From assembly GCA_950097015.1 (NCBI GenBank), contig CATNEN010000033.1, positions 2,542,001 to 2,606,000 on the forward strand: a DNA stretch of 64,000 nucleotides, in the 5' to 3' direction. Origin of the DNA: Macrostomum hystrix. Taxonomy: Eukaryota > Animalia > Platyhelminthes. How positions within the stretch are numbered: position 1 is the first letter of the stretch; the number at the start of each line of letters is the position of its first letter. Both the position numbers and the translations under genes were made by a program. Of this stretch, positions 44,283-54,691 are shown piece by piece. Under the pieces are notes generated by a model. The model saw nothing but the letters and a program-made list of their open reading frames with translations, had not been told where the DNA came from and ran no database searches.

Positions 44283-46853
44283 CTACAAGTTCCAGGCCTC
44301 TGCAGCAGCAGCAGCAAGGCCACTGCTGGGCCCCGTGCACTGGTTCTCCTTCCACCAGCCTCCCAGGTGAATGCCGTAATAGACTTTGTGCGACTCCACG
44401 CACGCCATGAGGTTGGAGGGGTTGAGGCAGGAGCGCCAGTTGTCAGACGAGTTGGCGCAGTCGCTGTCCTCATTCACCGGGGTGCCGGTGCAGACCCGGT
44501 AGCCATTGCTGCCCGGCTGCATGTCGGCTGTCCTGGGGAAGAACACTTCCGTGCCGTGGTGATAGGGGAAGCCCAGGTGGCCAGAGCAGCTGAATGCCGT
44601 TGCCAGGCGACTGGTGCCCGACAGCATCACAGGCGAGCAGATTGGCAGGTGCACGACAAGGTCCTTTGAATGAGCAGCAGGAGTTACCATCTTGCCTTGT
44701 TGAATTATGAGATTTAAAATATACAATGCTGAAAAAATGAATAGACTTATGCAGGCGTCGAACCCTAAACTATACATCCTCACGACGAAAATCGTTTAAA
44801 CGGAATCTTGGGTGATGGTCACACATCTGAGGAAGCCGTACCGTGAGAAGTGATCATCTTAGGAGGAGTTTGTGAGTCGGAGAACGCTTTTTGATTTTCT
44901 CGCTGTTGGATTTTCTCAAAATTCGAAGGTCGTTTTATAGAAACTTTTGACTCGAAGCGGTTCAGGGTGGTTGAAAAAGAAACGACTGAAAATGACTCCA
45001 TGCACATGGGCAACACCAATGGGTTACATAGTCGTTAAAGAAGCGTTGTTGGGTTTTGAATCCTGGCTATTCAAAGCTATGGAGGCACTTCGAGTCGCAA
45101 CAGTCGCTTGAACCTTGCAAGAGCTCATCACAAGAGCTCATCACAAGAGCTCATCACAAGAGCTCATCACAAGAGCTCATCACAAGAGCTCATCACAAGA
45201 GCTCATCACAAGAGCTCATCACAAGAGCTCATCACAAGAGCTCATCACAAGAGCTCATCACAAGAGCTCATCACAAGAGCTCATCACAAGAGCTCTTGTA
45301 ACTCTTTCTCTCGACGTTGCGAGAAATCTATGGAGACAATTTCATTTTTAAAGTTCGCTAGAGAGATCTCGAGGCACCAATAACTAAGTCAGCTTTCAGC
45401 CTTTAATCCCGCAGTTCACAATGTCCTCACATTTCCGTGCACCACCCGCCAGCTATTGGGCACCAGCCGGTCGAACGCCCTGGCGAAGAAATAATCTCCA
45501 ACTCGCGGCTCGCCGAATGAATAGAAGGCCAGCCGGCCCGGCGCCACCGAGTCGAAGACGGCCAGGTTGGCTGCAGCCAGGGTCGCCATGGCGCCGCCCA
45601 GCGAGTGCCCAGTGACCAGCAGGCTGTGGTCCGGGTTGGCCCTCATCAGGCCCAGCGTGGCCTCTTGTAGCTGCGGCCACAGGGCGTCGAAGCCGTTGCT
45701 GAAGTAAGCTTGCACTTTGCCGCCGATTGGCGAAGTCTGCTTCGGCATGGCCATGCTCATCAGGCCCTCCACCATCAGCTGGCTGCTGCCCGTGGTGCCC
45801 CGGAAGGCCAGCACGATCAACTTTCGGTCAGGAAGACGGCCTATATTTAATTGTGATGTTTTGAAATAGATTACTGCTCACCGACTCATCCTGAGCTGCA
45901 CAGCACCCACACATGCTCACCGACACATCCTGAGCAGCACAGCACCCACACATGCTCACCGACACATCCTGAGCAGTACAGCACCCACACATGCTCACCG
46001 ACACATGCTGAGCAGCACAGCACCCAAACATGCTCACCGACACATCCTGAGCAGCACAGCACCCACACATGCTCACCGACAAATCCAGAGCACTCGTCAT
46101 GCAGCATGTCGCAGGGAGCCGCAGCTTTGACCACGTTGACCAGGCGAGCCCCGCCAACATGAGCAGCAGGCGGGTAGTTGGCCAGGCAGGGCCCCGGCTC
46201 TGGCGCATAGGCGGCACCGGAGATGATGGCGGCGAGCTCGCTCAGTCGGGCGTCGAACTGGTAGTTGCCGTTGTCCGGCTCCTGGCACTTGCCCGGATCC
46301 ACGATCTCCTGCATTGGCAGCGAGGCGTGTGCGTTGTGGAAAATTAAGATTCGCCAGTGTACAGTGTAGCCAAAGCTGCCAATTTCGAATCGGTAAGCCT
46401 TCATTGAGTTCGTTTATCATAATCTAAGTAAAAAAACGCAACTCAAAGAGCGTTCTGACCATGAAAAACGGTTCTTAAATATTACTCGAAAAGCACTCAA
46501 TTGAGCAAGAGGAGAACCGGCCTGAGTACTGGGTCACCACTTCAGTTCAGTGTCTCTGAACTGCACCAACAGTGCAACACCCGTTTCTCTGAACTGGCGC
46601 AATTACCGTTAAACACCCAAGCCCCTGAAACACGCACCTGAGACGCGGAGCACTTGTTAACCAAGGAACCTGGCTCGTGACAGGCCCTGTCAATGGGGCA
46701 CCACCTGCAGGAGGTGCCTAGCCAGGATAATTTGGTGGCGCAGGTGCCGCAGTCCGCGTGGTTCGAGCAGCTCTCGCGCCTGTCGCTCGCCTCCAGCGCC
46801 GACGCTAGCAGCAGCGCCGGCAGGAGTGACAGGACTGCAGGCCTGAGCAGCAT
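44283..46853 (-). CDS. Secreted class-3 (Lipase_3) lipase with N-terminal Cys-rich PSI-like module
   Basis: Exons 46853-46638, 46308-46077, 45840-45431, 44663-44283 with matching phases. Signal peptide; C..C..C..C.WC...C module; AFRGT, VTGHSLGGA (Ser), FGEPRVG, D-LVVHLP (Asp), H-KVYYG (His). Confidence 0.93.
45120..45297. repeat. 13-bp tandem repeat aagagctcatcac, lipase intron 3
   Basis: Directly visible. Confidence 0.95.
45875..46090. repeat. 39-bp tandem repeat containing the lipase exon-2 donor site
   Basis: Six copies of gctcaccgac (minus strand gtcg|gtgagc) at 39-nt spacing. Confidence 0.92.
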
Positions 46854-47687
46854 TTTGGCAGGACTCCAATGGGTTTCTGGATCTATTGCAGCAATGAAAA
46901 GTGCACTAGACGTATTTTTTACTCAGTTTTGGTAGATAAGAAACATGCCCTTACAAAAGACTTTTTATGCTAACACAATGGGCCAGCAGGGCCGCATCTG
47001 CTTGGACTCTCATGGACTGCAGGTGAATTGTTCTTATACGCATGTAGGAGTTGTGAGCAGAGGTTTGCTGTAATTGCACAAGACCAAAAACACCGATATT
47101 CCCCATGCATTTCGCTACCATGGCCTGCACGCGCGTATTGCATGCACCTTGCGCTTATAGTTTATCAACTACTGAATTACACAATAGTAGTACGTAAAAA
47201 AGCGGTTTCAAAACAAATTGCGCGCTTAGCAAGCAAGCAAGTTTCTTTAATTCAAGGTATAAAAAACGATTTATTCGAGCACTGAACTTGGATGATGAAA
47301 TTCGGCTTATGAAGCTGCCGAGTAGGTTTGCATGGCAAGTGCACATTTCAGGCTCCTAATCTATCAGAGCAGTGTTTCAACCCTTGAACGATGAAGCTCA
47401 CGTTGAAGCTCCGATCCAGTTGAGCCAATAGAGACCTCAAGATGATAAGGTCTGTATTGGTACTCTGTTAAATAAATATATAATCTATTTTCTCGCATTA
47501 GATTGTCTGAATAGTCATGCACAATATATTCACGTATTTAAGTGCAGCTGTGGTAATCACAGTAACGCGTATATTCTTGCTTTGAATTAATGATAGCCAC
47601 TACGGATTCAGAAAGCCCATTGCAAGCTCAACTGTATGTGGGCCCTCACGAGAAGCTTAAGATATCAGAAGGCTACAAGGCACCTTG

Positions 47688-48987
47688 TCACCAGAAGCGG
47701 CCTCTATTTCCAAGATGAGCCGTCAGAGCCCGCTTGGGACAGACATCTGGGTCCGTGACGCGTGGATGCAACAGCACAATGCCCCGCTGCTTGGCCACTT
47801 CAGTGGCAGTTTCCAGGCAAAGACTGGATTTGAACTTGCGGTCAAAGATGTCCAGGTAGGCCAATCCCTCCGCCAGGCACACGTAGTTAAGCAGCGCTTC
47901 GTCGGTGATGCGTGGCACTCCGAACAGGTTGAGGTGTCTCAACTGAGGACAGATGGTGCGAATGTATTCAAGACTGCGGTCGGTGAGGTTGTGACAGCAG
48001 GTGAGGTTCAGCGTTTCAAGCTGCGTGAGGCCTTGGAGCAGGCTGAGCAGGTTTGAATCTGTCATGAGATAGCCATGCCGACGCAGATTGAGTACTCGTA
48101 ACAGCGGGCAGCGGGAGCGCACGATAGCCAGCGATTTCGGTGTCAGGTAGCAGCCCTCCAGGTCCAGGATTTCGAGTGACGCAGGCAGGATGCAACTCAG
48201 GGTTACATTGTTGAGCGCCTTCTGCCTGCGAAGCCGACTAATTAACTGGCTGGAGTAGGGAGTGGCCGCGTCACTTGTTTGAGAAGGCAACAATAATTTT
48301 CGGGAGATTTTCCCAAAACCTTTATTACTTCTGTATGTTTTATTATTAATAAAATCACTCACCTGGTTAAATAATCATCTACGAATTCCGAAAAATCGTA
48401 CTGCTTGATGTTTTTTGTTGCTTTATCCAGGCAGATCTCCGTGAGCTTTTTCACTTTGCAATTTTCATGGTATGGATTCTGAAAGCAGTAGGAAATAGTG
48501 GCAAAAAAAACGCACTTATTGGAATAAAATCTGATATGAATAGAAAGATTATGAGGATGGTTCCTGTTTTTGCATGAACCAAGCATGATTAGCAAAAATA
48601 TTAATTCGTGCAATGTCTTTTTTCAAGGAAAGTTTATTTTGCAGACTTTAAGCACTAAATGCACTAAAAGCAATTTCTTACTTCTTCCAGTTGTCTTCCA
48701 TACGTAGCCCTTACAAGCTGGCGGCTTTTGCCATTCGAAAATTCTTCTTTTGTCTCAAATCTTTTAACGCCGCGATAGGATATATCCTCTGATAAAACAG
48801 ATATTAAGAAATCTTGTTTGTAACCTGTCAGCAAGCTGCATTCCAGAAGCTCTTGAAGATCCACGAATGCACCACCAATAATTGTGAGTCCTTCCCGGGC
48901 GGCGCCATATCGCAGAAGATAAGCAAGTGTCTTCCCCACCCTCTTTCTTACCTGCGGGTCTGACTTTGCAAAAACCTTACTTTTCAT
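47688..48987 (-). CDS. Tpt1/KptA N-terminal (RNA-lobe)-like domain fused to a BC-box-like motif and Cys-containing LRRs, ~354 aa
   Basis: Exons 48987-48682, 48478-48363, 48330-47688 with canonical GT-AG borders and matching phases (0, 2). N-terminus KTLAYLLRYGA..GL...FVDL.ELL...KRF...VRATYG; KLTEICLDKA; LRRs LEILDLEGC, LRVLNL, LETLNLTCC.NLTD, LRHLNL.GVPRITD. Confidence 0.8.
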
Positions 48988-49523
48988 GTCCTGAGAATGA
49001 AATACGATTCACCTAATGAATAATATTATTAAATGGAAGGCCTTCACTAAAAAAATTATATATAAATATATACAAACTGACGTAAAGCTCTACAGCGAAT
49101 GCTTCTAAATGAGAAAATCACGAAAAGTAGATTGTAATTGTGTAACGTGACAAAAAAGTATTGCACAAACGAAACCACATTTGTGTCAAATGAAAAACAA
49201 TTTAAAATATTAATTAAATATTGTGCAAATTATACTTTTCTAAAGTAAATTTTAATTATATTTTTCTGCTAAAGTTTAATCCGACGCATTTTTAGCATAT
49301 AAACAAGCAAGCAAGCAACCATTTCATTTTTAGTATATTAGATTCAGAGAATGTGTTATATAATAATTGATTTCTTACATAACCCGTATAAAAGCGTAAT
49401 AATTAAGACACACGGGTATATTTTGTCCAGCAAACAAATAGGCGTTTATTATTATATTTTTATATTTTGATTCTTAATTACTGCATCAAGAAAGGAAAAG
49501 TAAAGTAGCTGGCAAGCTAAAGT

Positions 49524-51869
49524 ATGCAACTACTACGAGCACTATCAATTCTACTGATTGTTGCTTGCATTAATGCTCAGTCTGGGCTAAAGGAACAGAA
49601 GCTTCAAAAACCAAAGCTTGCCTCATTTGCAATGCCTACACTGAGAGTCCTTTACTGGTGAGTTGCATTAGCTAGCTATAATATTTTATTTTATATTTTT
49701 TATACTAACTGTAAAAAAAGAAATTTTCTAGCAATTAGGCACCTGTTCAAAGTTTTATAGATCTAATGTTAATGAGTAGGCCTAATGTAGCTTTCTTAAG
49801 AAAGTTAGACCTTGCCTAGGCCTAGCTAACCTAGGTAACAGTCCACTTTTGTAGGCCTAACAGCTAATTCAGTATGACCACTTTGGTAACAAATTATCTG
49901 AGTTTGTCTGATCTATTATCTAGTTATATGTGGCCTTAAGTGTCAAAAAGCTAAGCTTTGAAGTGTTCTAATGTTTTCATTTGAAGAACAGACTGTTTAT
50001 GTCAGGAACATCACAATTGATTTTACGCTAAGAGGCTGGCATGTCAGTACTCCTCCAGCACTGACAGGTCAAACTGCATTTGCAGTACTTGTAGCCTATT
50101 GGGCTGGCTCATTGGTACTGACAATTGATTTTTAAAAAATTGCAATGATTTACTTTGTTTTGTATAATTGTTTTTCCTTTTGAAATTGCATGTCCTCATC
50201 ATGGAATATTGGAAAACAATGAAATGAACAAATAACAACCAACAGCAATGAGTGAAAATGGTCATTTGGTCAGTCATTCAGAAAAAATCACAGTGGGTAG
50301 TAATGAGCCACAATGAACTTTCAAAGTATAGAAATATTAGCAGTTAGGAGAATCAAGATACACTTCTATATTTTCCCCTAGGGGCCTAGTCATCCCTAGC
50401 CCCAGCATGCAAAGCCAGCATATATCTATGGCATTTAATCCCCCAAATCCATATCAGCACATAAAACCTTGCAAAGCTACATCAGCATATGTCTGTGACC
50501 TTTGCCATGTCATATTTATACATCACTGTGGTCCTGTGAGTTTAAATGAGTTTTAAAAATAATTACATGAAACAAAATAAAATATTGCCATGTTAACTTG
50601 TTTGCTGGCTAGTCCCATAGGCATAGATTGAGATAATGGTGCCAGTCTTTTACTCTAGCTCTAAGTCATCTGTATTGAATTGGTGTTGAATTTCTCTGTT
50701 GATTGCCATTCTAGCCTCTATTCATCCTCTGATGATTCAATGTCCACTTTCCTAATCTTTCTGGGCCAGTTTTCTTTGTGTTTGAGTTCTGCTCTTACTT
50801 TTACTGCACTGGCAGCCTGGCTTCCCTTAGCCTTATCTTTGGCTTATTTTATACTGAGCTGGCTTCCCTTAGCCTTATCTTTGGCTTATTTTATACTGAG
50901 CTGGCTTCCCTTAGCCTTATCTTTGGCTTATTTTATACTGAGCTGGCTTCCCTTAGCCTTATCTTTGGCTTATTTTATACTGAGCTGGCTTCCCTTAGCC
51001 TTATCTTTGGCTTATTTTATACTGAGCTGGCTTCCCTTAGCCTTATCTTTGGCTTATTTTATACTGAGCTGGCTTCCCTTAGCCTTATCTTTGGCTTATT
51101 TTATACTGAGCTGGCTTCCCTTGACTAAATCTTCTTTCACTGAATTAAGAACAACAGTCAAATTGTCATATTGAACAATCATGATGTTTCCAACTAGTTG
51201 CCCATTATGGGATTACAGTGCCCATTTGCATTTTCAGTTTATTCGAATTTTTCCTAAATTAAATTGGATGACTAGTCTATACAAGTAGATTATCCACAAG
51301 CCGCACTAATCACTAAATTTATCCTCATTCTCCCCTTAGCTACTCCTGAGGCTACCGCCGGGTGTTTGAGGAATTTGCTCACATCCTGTCGCAGAAGTTT
51401 CCCACTCTGCGCATCGAAGGTGACAATTATCCTCCACCCGCATGGCGGCAGCAGCTTTGCAGCGCTCTATCCTTCCTGAAGTTCGCTATCATCATAGCCA
51501 TCCTATCCGGCCTGGATCCCTTCCCCTACCTGGGCTTGGCCACGCCGCAGGTGTTCAGCCTGGCACAGGAGAACAAGCTCTACGCCTGCATGATGCTGTT
51601 CTTCATTGGCAACGCCATCGAGGGCCAGCTTATTTCCACCGGCGCCTTCGAAGTGTCCTACAATGGTTTGGCTAATAACCTAATACCTAGATTACTTTCA
51701 TTGTCATAGTTACTCTGGTGTTTAATTACTGCTTGAACTGAAATTCCATTCCGCAGACATGGTCATTTGGTCCAAGCTGGAGAATGGCCGGGTTCCATCA
51801 CCAAGCGAGCTGATTAACATCATCGACAGTCAGCTATCAATGAGCTCATCGTCCATTCCCAGCGCTTAA
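49524..51869 (+). CDS. SELENOT: Selenoprotein T (CxxU; Sec TGA at 51347-51349)
   Basis: Exons 49524-49657, 51340-51665, 51757-51869. Signal peptide; LYC|YSUGYRRVFEEF, IEGDNYPPP, ENKLYACMMLFF.GN.IE.QL.STGAFEV, IWSKLE.GR.P. Confidence 0.96.
50812..51122. repeat. 42-bp tandem repeat, 7+ copies, SELENOT intron 1
   Basis: Unit gagctggcttcccttagccttatctttggcttattttatact. Confidence 0.95.
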
Positions 51870-52607
51870 CTCTATGGCCTGACTCGAAGCATACGCATTG
51901 CATTCGGCTGTACGCCTCGAATTCGCCTCGCCTGTACTTTTCCTGTCACATTATTACCCCTAAATGTCCTTCTCCTTTAATGCTATGGGGAAAATCATGT
52001 TTAGCACATGCATTACTCGCTTGTCATGCATTAGTTTAACATCCTAGATGAACAAATGGAAGTTAATATGTAAGGGAAATCTCATTTCGTCTCGAAAGAA
52101 ATTATGTCGCCGTAACTCTGTTGCTAAGGAAATCCTGTTGCTATGACACAGAAATGTTAGCTGAGTAAGGTAAATTCCGCTTTTATGCAGGATGAGTGAT
52201 AATTGCTAAGGGAAATCCCGTTACTATGCCACCAGAATAGCCGTTTTTAATAGAAATCCCTTTATTTTACAGCCAGGTTACTTTACTTTATGCCCGTCTT
52301 GTATAGGGAAATCTAAGTCAAGGCCGTGTTGATAATCAGTCGAGTGCTATTAGCTATTTCTAAGCAACCAGGATGTCCCATAGGCAACACGCAGGCATAT
52401 ACAGAATCGCCATTCAATTGTCCTTAATTCGCGAATTCATTCGGCTTTCACACCCGTCGCTAACCCAGATTTTTTTCCAATTCTTGATGTTTTGTTTGGA
52501 ACCCATGCGAAAAATGCCACTTTGACTACCAATATGAGTAGTATTCTAGAGTTATTGGCTCGCTTATTCTATTCATTGGAACTGGCCCGCCCTTGGATGC
52601 TAGCGCA

Positions 52608-53394: not shown

Positions 53395-54691
53395 ATGACC
53401 ACGGCTCACCGGCCTACATTCGACACGGCCCGTGGTGGGCAGAGCATGCGAGAGCGCGACCTCAGCGCCCAGTCCAAGCAGTACAGCTCCCGAGACCTGC
53501 CCAGCCACACGCGCCTGAAATATCGCCAGGAAGGCCAGGGTACCGCCGAGGATGCCCGAGTGGGCAGCCGTGACTTCAAGCGCGATCTGGAGGAGCGCGA
53601 GCGTCGACATCGCGGCGGTGGCAGCAGCGCCGAGGAGCCGGCTTCGTCATCGTCTTCGAAGCGGGTCCGACTGGCCGACGCGCCCGGCGGTGGCGCAGCT
53701 GCGGCGCTTCCGGCCAACCTGGACGCCGACGACGCCGCTGTGGCGGCAGCCGATTTGGATTCCGACGCTGATTCAGTAGACGACGCCGACGAAGACGAGG
53801 CCGCCGAGTTGATGGCCGAGCTGGCGAAGATTCGGCGCGAGCGGGAGGCCGAGGCGGCGCGCAGGTTGGCATTTTGACTTGTCACTAACCGTCTCTTCCC
53901 CATTATATTCTGCGAGTGGTTCGAGTAACACACGGGTGTTTTTTTAAGTTGATCGTTTTACGAATTCTTGGAATGATTGCGAATGAAATTCCATGGGGTT
54001 TCTATAATAGATATTCTGAGTGATTATTTTATGAAACCGCCTATTAGATTTGACCATAATTGCCCATAGAATCGCTTATTATAGTATTCATGGGATTCCC
54101 TGAGGAATTTCTGATCGGATTCCTAAGGAATTCCCGACGAGATTCCCTAAGGAATTCCCGACGAGATTCCGTAGGAACTCCCGATTTGGTTCTCTTAAGA
54201 ATTCCCGATGAGATTGCCGAGGGATTTTCCGATGAGATTCCCTGAGGAATTCCGGCAGAGATTCCTGAGGAATTCATGACAAGATTCCCTGGGGATTTTA
54301 AGGATTTAAATTTCCTCTAGGAATCAGATAATGAAATAGATAGGATGTCTAGAAAATTAAGTGAGCAAAATCACACAAATTTGTTTCATCCATCGATAGG
54401 GAAGCCGAGCGGCAGGCCGATGAGGAGCGCATTCGCACTGAGAACATTCTCAAAGGCAATCCGCTGCTCAACAAAGCTAAGCAGGCTGTCCCGGGCGTTT
54501 CAGCCGGCAGCGGCGGAGGCGGCGTTGCGGCCGACTTCAAGGTGAAGCGCCGCTGGAATGACGACGTCGTGTTCAAGAACTGCGCCAAAGACGACGACAA
54601 CGGAGGCAGCCGCCAGCGCCCGGCCAGCTTCATCAACGACACGCTGCGCTCGGAGTTTCACAAGAAGTTCATGGACAAGTACATCAAGTAG
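53395..54691 (+). CDS. CWC15: Spliceosome-associated protein CWC15
   Basis: Exons 53395-53864 and 54400-54691. [81 protein letters not shown]. Confidence 0.96.
54090..54310. repeat. Degenerate ggaattcc-rich repeat in the CWC15 intron
   Basis: Repeated gattccctaaggaattcccgacga-like units. Confidence 0.75.

Follow-up and report, generated by a model that had tools for sequence, protein, structure and literature searches.

A spliced and expressed gene for a two-module protein

The window analysed here, a 64,000-nucleotide stretch of the Macrostomum hystrix genome (contig CATNEN010000033.1, positions 2,542,001 to 2,606,000), contains in an AT-rich eukaryotic locus a three-exon gene on the minus strand, the product of which combines the RNA lobe of the tRNA 2'-phosphotransferase Tpt1 (also TRPT1 or KptA) with a module of cysteine-type leucine-rich repeats (LRRs). 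The coding sequence (CDS) begins with an ATG at 48987 and is closed by a stop codon at 47690-47688; after splicing it comprises 981 nt plus the stop and encodes a product of 327 amino acids (aa). An in-frame stop lies seven codons 5' of this ATG.

The exon structure was compared with assembled RNA contigs from public sequencing runs. Both intron joints, 48682/48478 and 48363/48249 (GT..AG on the minus strand), are present in RNA contigs of runs X1, X3 and X4, from which precisely 48479-48681 (203 nt) and 48250-48362 (113 nt) are missing, and single contigs cover all three exons with zero gaps (record 1 of X1, 1115 nt; record 3 of X3, 1071 nt). The original prediction, made from the DNA letters, had placed the first joint correctly, and it is indeed spliced in phase into the segment that carries KLTEICLDKA; the 354-aa product proposed there has to be shortened to 327 aa, and the second intron lies at 48250-48362. 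That prediction had also considered that exon 1 might end separately or continue into an NAD (nicotinamide adenine dinucleotide) lobe elsewhere. The contigs instead join all three exons, and the 64-kb window holds no NAD lobe.

When words were sampled from a 1.5-kb query, each of four public RNA runs, all from one organism, contained ∼0.62-0.66 of them, close to the share of the query that is exonic. In exon 1, RNA contigs and window disagree at three positions (48799, 48937 and 48943), all of which are synonymous (S63, V17 and K15), and in one run at a fourth position, 49011, in the 5' untranslated region (UTR). It is close to certain that this is a genuine, spliced and expressed gene for a two-module protein.

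Upstream, the RNA contigs break at an AT-rich simple repeat at 49048-49081, in the 5' UTR or promoter region. A separate low-depth RNA contig of run X4 covers 49082-49166, so position 49047 need not be the true 5' end.

The N-terminal module: a Tpt1 RNA lobe without the NAD lobe

Exon 1 matches the Pfam profile PTS_2-RNA (PF01885) with an E value of 8.9e-8 and 32.8 bits (cut-off 26), but only over profile positions 4-83 of 177. The assignment of these 102 aa to the Tpt1 RNA lobe, originally made by eye against human TRPT1, thus holds, and HMMER aligns the exon to 7yw3 in the same way as was done by eye. A profile of 16 N-terminal lobes from the family to which the protein belongs (described below) recovers three eukaryotic Tpt1 crystal structures from the PDB at E values of 2e-11 to 2e-10, and archaeal and bacterial Tpt1 structures at 1e-7 to 1e-6. 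The family and Tpt1 motifs pair as 'LAYLLRYGA' with 'LSYALRHGA', 'KRFE' with 'KQRF' or 'KGRYE', and 'VRAxYGRRF' with 'IRARYGHSF'.

For structure comparisons, we used an AlphaFold2 model of the Macrostomum lignano ortholog, built on 27 family sequences (mean predicted local distance difference test score 88.4). Residues 10-99 of this model superimpose on mouse TRPT1 (7yw2) with a root-mean-square deviation (rmsd) of 1.7 Å over 86 residues (Z 13.8); for human TRPT1, the rmsd is 1.9 Å over 85 residues (Z 13.3). After residue ∼100, the model has helices and LRRs instead of the NAD (ADP-ribosyltransferase) lobe.

In Clostridium thermocellum Tpt1 (CthTpt1), the RNA lobe comprises aa 1-85; Arg18 and Arg68 form bidentate bonds to the transferred 2'-phosphate, His19 contacts the neighbouring 3'-phosphate only, and Arg121, the fourth residue of the tetrad, is located in the NAD lobe (PMC6333775). 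By alignment, the 327-aa protein keeps the two arginines as R26 and R76, has Y27 in place of the histidine, and lacks the fourth arginine together with its lobe, all as originally predicted. Across 27 family members from six phyla, R26 is invariant, Y27 is found in at least 90%, and R76 is nearly invariant. The 'GHS' motif of Tpt1 has become 'GRx', and the 'RA-x-YG' strand is kept.

There is no NAD lobe in the protein, and canonical Tpt1 queries match exon 1 only across the 64-kb window. Similarly, neither an alternative NAD-lobe exon nor a separate TRPT1 was found in a search limited to this window. Because the NAD lobe and the fourth tetrad arginine are absent, the protein cannot act as a phosphotransferase, in agreement with the original prediction, while the phosphate clamp is kept. 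Both sequence profile and model indicate that aa ∼10-100 are the RNA lobe of Tpt1, detached from its NAD lobe and non-catalytic.

We also considered the conserved linker 'PYHxGT' as a vestige of the NAD-lobe 'HGT' motif. This idea was dropped, as HMMER pairs the linker with the non-catalytic 'LDHEED' of TkoKptA.

The C-terminal module: helices and Cys-type LRRs

In the model, the C-terminal module (aa ∼107-327) consists of three helices (112-122, 135-147 and 153-159) followed by six strand-helix repeats of ∼26 residues, and the LRR part is matched by Pfam LRR_6 and LRR_4. The family profile recovers FBXL2 (1.7e-42), FBXL17 (3e-25), Rad7 (3.7e-18) and SKP2 (3e-16) from the PDB, and also KDM2B, COI1 and TIR1. 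Similar results are obtained by structure, since Foldseek with VIA-align against the PDB gives SKP2 (Z 17.8), Rad7-Elc1 (5zb2, Z 15.3) and FBXL17 (Z 15.3).

Among reviewed AlphaFold models (AFDB Swiss-Prot), AMN1 proteins from rat, mouse, human, orangutan and zebrafish take ranks 1-4 and 6, with E values of 7e-10 to 2e-8, 19-21% identity, and alignments that set query residue 106-115 against AMN1 residue 2-13. The best of these start from the first helix before the LRRs, with residue 106/107 paired to AMN1 residue 4/5, and have hit-normalised TM scores of 0.58-0.62. FBXL15 and Schizosaccharomyces pombe rhp7 rank after AMN1, the latter aligned from residue 103. In the ESM Atlas, AMN1 clusters come next after the family's own cluster, with a feature score of 0.85 that is to be read as a lead only. 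Taken together, these comparisons show that the module as a whole resembles AMN1 and belongs to the class of Cys-type LRRs found in cullin-RING substrate receptors, and the predicted fold of aa ∼107-327 is closest to those of AMN1, FBXL15, SKP2 and Rad7/rhp7.

The fourth row of the Atlas results is a mollusc-centred cluster named after Caenorhabditis elegans EEED8.10, in which an RNA-recognition motif (RRM) is combined with FBXL15-type LRRs, a second instance of an RNA-binding domain joined to such an LRR module; this too is a lead only.

The fusion is a conserved animal family

A word-index search with the exon-3 open reading frame returned a single protein, BOX15_Mlig021724g1 of M. lignano (325 aa, PF01885 plus LRR), which is 75% identical to the 327-aa protein end to end. 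The M. lignano gene has introns at the same two positions, exon 2 is 116 nt long in both species, and the order of neighbours (Cwc15, an Rdx-family gene, the fusion gene, Lipase_3) is shared with M. lignano contigs NIVC01001230/1227. Between the two orthologs, the proportion of nonsynonymous differences (pN) is 0.16 against a saturated synonymous proportion (pS) of 0.73; for the N-terminal lobe alone, pN is 0.20 and pS 0.83. This comparison indicates that the gene is under strong purifying selection.

In M. lignano, the locus is found on two contigs (L001:6001-7174 and L002:6001-7174), the CDSs of which are one nucleotide apart. The two copies could be retained haplotypes or a recent duplication.

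The fusion is found well beyond Macrostomum, as the original prediction had suggested might be looked for in other flatworms and lophotrochozoans. An exhaustive HMMER search with exon 1 yielded 37 representatives, many of which also match the C-terminal module. Fusion members occur in molluscs (Elysia, Plakobranchus, Bulinus, Physella, Biomphalaria, Dreissena, Mya, Sinanodonta and Liolophura), annelids (Capitella and Dimorphilus), echinoderms (Patiria, Acanthaster and Asterias), the hemichordate Saccoglossus, amphioxus (three Branchiostoma species and a hybrid) and the jellyfish Rhopilema. No vertebrate, arthropod or nematode members turned up in these searches, which were not exhaustive for absence.

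Members of the family are ∼300-390 aa long; they share the motifs LRYGA, KRFE and VRA, a PYHxGTKV linker with invariant H and V, an L-x-E-x-C helix and some six LRRs. The 327-aa M. hystrix protein has all of these and is placed inside the family clade. 'LRYGA' is present in all fusion members except that of Dimorphilus ('LRHGA'), and 'GHS' in none. In a maximum-likelihood tree with an arbitrary root, the N-terminal lobes of the fusion proteins form one clade (support 98/82), apart from canonical Tpt1.

Two members depart from this pattern. The Dimorphilus gyrociliatus protein (P0020, 334 aa) is the sole full-length fusion member with the Tpt1 histidine ('LLRHGA'); it lies at the base of the fusion clade and may represent an intermediate state. 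In a 487-aa protein of the Branchiostoma hybrid (P0002), either a paralog or an isoform, the first LRR segments are repeated internally, so that four stretches match the C-terminal module.

Other multi-stretch proteins (P0005, P0009 and P0028-32) were examined as candidate orphan lobes and rejected, as they are canonical Tpt1 with RH and GHS, in some cases repeated. Several canonical Tpt1 units occur in P0005/P0042 (847/863 aa, metagenomic) and in P0028-P0032, which come from environmental assemblies. These tandem-Tpt1 proteins have up to three 'RANxGHS' motifs per chain, an unusual architecture.

We found no paper that describes Tpt1, TRPT1 or KptA together with an LRR or an F-box; the nearest, LRRC9-ART, is unrelated. 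The original statement that no protein of this architecture is known therefore holds for the literature searched but not for public protein sets, which already contain the fusion from at least six animal phyla under the name 'uncharacterized' or an automatic '2'-phosphotransferase'. The latter name wrongly implies enzyme activity. The family is thus a conserved and uncharacterised animal family, in which an orphan enzyme lobe is joined to a receptor-type LRR module.

An artefact of annotation or assembly, a chimeric transcript or a TRPT1-derived pseudogene in decay has next to no probability as an explanation. Apart from the missing catalytic lobe and the replaced catalytic histidine, essentially nothing speaks for it, whereas three runs contain the spliced RNA, M. 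lignano shares exon structure and synteny, purifying selection is strong, at least six phyla have the fusion, and the tyrosine substitution is a signature of the family. The features of the gene and its surroundings are collected in Table 1.

Table 1. Features of the fusion gene and its neighbours (positions within the 64-kb window)
Feature	Position	Strand	Basis or remark
Transcribed span	47636..49047	-	RNA contigs; exons 49047-48682, 48478-48363 and 48249-47636
Exon 1 CDS, aa 1-102, 306 nt; Tpt1/KptA N-terminal RNA lobe; GTAAGA donor	48682..48987	-	
Codons R26-Y27 in 'LLRYGA', equivalent to Tpt1 Arg18-His19 (CthTpt1 numbering)	48907..48912	-	HMMER alignments
Codon R76 in 'KRFE', equivalent to Tpt1 Arg68	48760..48762	-	Alignments
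Intron 1, 203 nt, GT..AG, phase 0	48479..48681	-	Joint in three runs; same position in M. lignano
Exon 2, 116 nt; conserved linker 'NPYHxxxKV' and first pre-LRR helix	48363..48478	-	RNA contigs; same length in M. lignano
KLTEICLDKA, aa 113-122, BC-box-like, exon 2	48419..48448	-	Read from sequence
Intron 2, 113 nt, GT..AG, phase 2	48250..48362	-	Joint in three runs; position kept in M. lignano
Exon 3 CDS, aa 141-327; pre-LRR helices 2 and 3 and LRR domain	47691..48249	-	
Six Cys-containing (FBXL/AMN1-type) LRRs, ∼aa 160-305	47757..48194	-	Model strands, Pfam, PDB profile matches
Stop codon	47688..47690	-	3' UTR reaches at least 47636
Neighbouring genes	44325-46818, 51334-51872, 53407-53580	-	Lipase_3 downstream; Rdx-family and Cwf/Cwc15 upstream of the fusion gene

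A putative reader of phosphorylated nucleotides

We tentatively propose, from sequence and model, that the protein recognises a phosphorylated nucleotide or RNA without catalysis and presents it on an LRR module similar to those of cullin-RING receptors, a reading to which we give somewhat less than an even chance. The Tpt1 lobe would bind a phosphorylated nucleotide, with an RNA 2'-phosphate junction or a phosphorylated RNA or DNA end as the likeliest ligand. The LRR module would couple recognition of this ligand to protein partners, as a scaffold resembling a cullin-RING substrate receptor; the conserved helix 'K/R-L-x-E-x-C' would dock an adaptor of the Elongin C or Skp1 type; and the bound RNA-protein complexes, or the receptor protein itself, would be ubiquitinated.

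Two precedents make such a reader plausible by analogy. In PCMTD1, a paralog of a repair methyltransferase recognises L-isoaspartyl damage on behalf of the cullin-RING ligase CRL5 (PMC12590147). A stand-alone RNA ligase of amphioxus requires and produces 2'-PO4 junctions, and amphioxus has both this ligase and the fusion protein (PMC10946426 for the ligase).

Several observations weigh against this proposal. Lys66 of Tpt1, which contacts the phosphate, is not conserved in the family. Unrelated LRR proteins, including ANP32, NLRP1 and ribonuclease inhibitor, also score highly in the comparisons of the C-terminal module; since LRR folds match many unrelated LRR proteins, the fold does not establish function. 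The remaining points concern the pre-LRR segment, with the helix that would dock the adaptor. The BC-box consensus is (S,T,P)Lxxx(C,S,A)xxxPhi (PMC4878042), and KLTEICLDKA, which lies within model helix 112-122, fits its core L-x3-C-x3-Phi (L114, C118 and A122), but its first position is K or R in the family, not S, T or P. Among 14 members from several phyla, the leucine of the helix is invariant and the glutamate two residues on nearly so, but the motif cysteine is present in only 10, with G, L or T in the others. The motif is not above chance: when the 327-aa protein is shuffled, the pattern L...C...phi arises in 54% of shuffles, L...[CSA]...phi in 95%, and the strict [STP]L form in 37%, and the sole strict match in the real protein falls inside an LRR. 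A profile of the pre-LRR segment run against all PDB sequences gives noise (best E 0.6, Rad7 0.86, ZYG11B absent), and the Pfam models for F-box, F-box-like, SOCS-box and VHL find no match in the 14 members at E values up to 10. The 'FPDEYL' found in relatives is unfit for the spacing of a Cul2-box (Phi-P-xx-Phi-xxx-Phi, PMC4878042), its ninth position being polar, and the Macrostomum proteins have F-V/N-D-D without the proline at this site.

With a motif at chance level and no profile match, the BC-box is a lead from position and conservation, not a finding. It is a reasonable lead, in that both resemble what is seen in AMN1 and Rad7, but it is not demonstrated. Of the layout originally predicted, the Tpt1 lobe, the conserved helix and the Cys-type LRRs (six in the model) are retained, and the BC-box has the standing of a lead.

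These results bear directly on the version closest to the original prediction, in which the protein would be a BC-box receptor like ZYG11, PRAME or Rad7, acting with Elongin C and Cul2 or Cul5 to read RNA 2'-phosphate junctions, and which we regard as doubtful. The fit of L114, C118 and A122 to the consensus core (PMC4878042) is in its favour. HMMER also places the family helix in register with Rad7 'SLQSLCITKI', the later helices and LRRs align with Rad7 at 3.7e-18 overall, and structure points the same way, through Rad7-Elc1 and the rhp7 alignment described above. Yet the Rad7 helix stretch itself scores -3 bits, the motif is at chance level with a cysteine that is not invariant, neither ZYG11B nor Rad7 is significantly matched by the pre-LRR profile, Pfam finds no SOCS or VHL box, and there is no clear Cul box.

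The adaptor could equally be Skp1, because yeast Amn1 has been reported to act through Skp1 and Cdc53: it co-precipitates both, and requires both to degrade Ace2 by ubiquitination dependent on an SCF (Skp1-cullin-F-box) ligase, via an atypical F-box (PMC6181423). The pre-LRR helices of the fusion protein would then be a degenerate F-box, as proposed for yeast Amn1, on Skp1-Cul1. This version, to which we likewise give a low probability, is consistent with AMN1 homologs as the best whole-module structural matches, with SKP2, FBXL17 and FBXL2 as the best matches among solved structures, and with the resemblance that we see between 'FPDEYL..I..L' in relatives and the start of an F-box. Against it, the 14 members have no F-box or F-box-like Pfam match, SKP2 structural alignments begin past its F-box (chain residues 166-216 onward), and the proline of 'FPDE' is lost in Macrostomum. 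We found no literature linking AMN1 to Elongin BC. By analogy, a cullin-RING link is plausible, with Elongin C or Skp1 as the putative adaptor.

The LRR module might also have no ubiquitin-ligase role. As a plain protein-binding scaffold it would hold an RNA-processing or signalling partner next to an RNA-binding Tpt1 lobe, for example as a cofactor, chaperone or inhibitor in tRNA/RNA ligation or repair. LRR proteins with scaffold-type functions include ANP32, ribonuclease inhibitor, NXF1, and yeast Amn1 in its binding of the GTPase Tem1. This explanation is unlikely but deserves to be taken seriously: no adaptor box is detectable, LRR proteins outside the ligases match at Z 12-13, invariant residues lie outside any BC-box (the linker 'PYHxGTKV' and others), and the mollusc RRM plus FBXL15-type LRR family of the Atlas, a lead only, would be in keeping with it. 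The top matches with the longest coverage, which include the N-terminal helices, nevertheless all belong to cullin-RING receptor families, and LRRs of the Cys type are characteristic of FBXL proteins.

The ligand, too, has an alternative. Since the Tpt1 lobe bound the pAp part of coenzyme A in a crystal, the orphan lobe could bind a small nucleotide, such as pAp, coenzyme A, NADP(H) or ADP-ribose-1''-phosphate/Appr>p, that regulates the LRR module. A sensor of this kind would have a parallel in FBXL5 with its hemerythrin domain. We think it quite improbable. In its favour are the crystal structure of CthTpt1, in which the RNA lobe holds the pAp moiety of coenzyme A (PMC6333775), the reported activity of Tpt1 on NADP(H) (PMC10622864), and the retention of the phosphate-clamping arginines in a protein that lacks those residues of the NAD lobe which contact the base or line the extended RNA path. 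However, the surface of the N-terminal lobe is rich in lysine and arginine before the helix ('RKRVGK'), like that of the RNA-binding Tpt1.

Implications for animal 2'-phosphate biology

Why animals keep Tpt1/TRPT1 is a puzzle, because RtcB, the main animal tRNA ligase, forms junctions without a 2'-phosphate and mice can do without TRPT1 (PMC3400036). With the fusion family, the Tpt1 RNA lobe has a second descendant, which is non-catalytic and has been kept under purifying selection in flatworms, molluscs, annelids, echinoderms, hemichordates, amphioxus and a jellyfish. That the family is conserved suggests that these animals contain a phosphorylated nucleotide or RNA ligand which matters to them, and the fusion to a receptor-type LRR suggests an output in signalling or degradation rather than repair.

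In its most far-reaching form, which we consider improbable, the family would be the first cullin-RING substrate receptor to read an RNA 2'-phosphate or a related phosphorylated RNA end, retained in animals in which a yeast-type 5'-phosphate ligation pathway is still in use. The state of RNA ligation or repair would then be coupled to ubiquitination of associated proteins, and the 2'-phosphate RNA biology of animals would gain a dedicated non-enzymatic reader. Either outcome would be informative, as a new reader of an RNA mark or as a new use for an orphan enzyme lobe, and the hypothesis is directly testable, since M. lignano is amenable to RNA interference and the protein is small.

Comparison with known systems

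With Tpt1/TRPT1/KptA, the fusion protein shares a winged-helix RNA lobe that is homologous in sequence and fold, with the Arg18 and Arg68 equivalents and 'RA-x-YG' kept. It differs in that the NAD lobe and the fourth arginine are absent, His is replaced by Tyr and 'GHS' by 'GRx', LRRs are added, and the lobes form a separate clade.

With AMN1 and FBXL15, it shares the same class of Cys-type LRRs and, in the case of AMN1, a module of ∼250 aa with N-terminal helices followed by LRRs. The fusion protein and AMN1 are only 19-21% identical, however, and AMN1 lacks a nucleic-acid-binding domain at its N terminus; an F-box is recognisable in FBXL15, whereas none is detected in the fusion family. Rad7/rhp7 has a collinear helix with L-x3-C-x3-I, two further helices and Cys-type LRRs, but the similarity of the helix alone is not significant. 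Rad7 is the BC-box plus LRR subunit of the Rad7-Rad16-Elc1-Cul3 ligase, acts on damaged DNA with Rad16, and has no Tpt1 lobe.

The putative reader would follow the logic of PCMTD1, in which the paralog of a repair enzyme has been retained to recognise a lesion or mark and is joined to a cullin-RING docking element, in this case a bona fide SOCS box for which binding to Elongin BC and CUL5 has been shown (PMC12590147). PCMTD1 has another fold, its mark is on protein rather than nucleic acid, and there is no homology to the fusion protein.

KDM2A/B and FBXL5 likewise have an extra ligand- or nucleic-acid-binding domain N-terminal to an adaptor box and Cys-type LRRs, and KDM2B, KDM2A and FBXL5 are among the LRR matches of the fusion family. 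They differ from it in having true F-boxes and other sensor domains, and the analogy between these sensor domains and the Tpt1 lobe of the fusion protein is a functional one.

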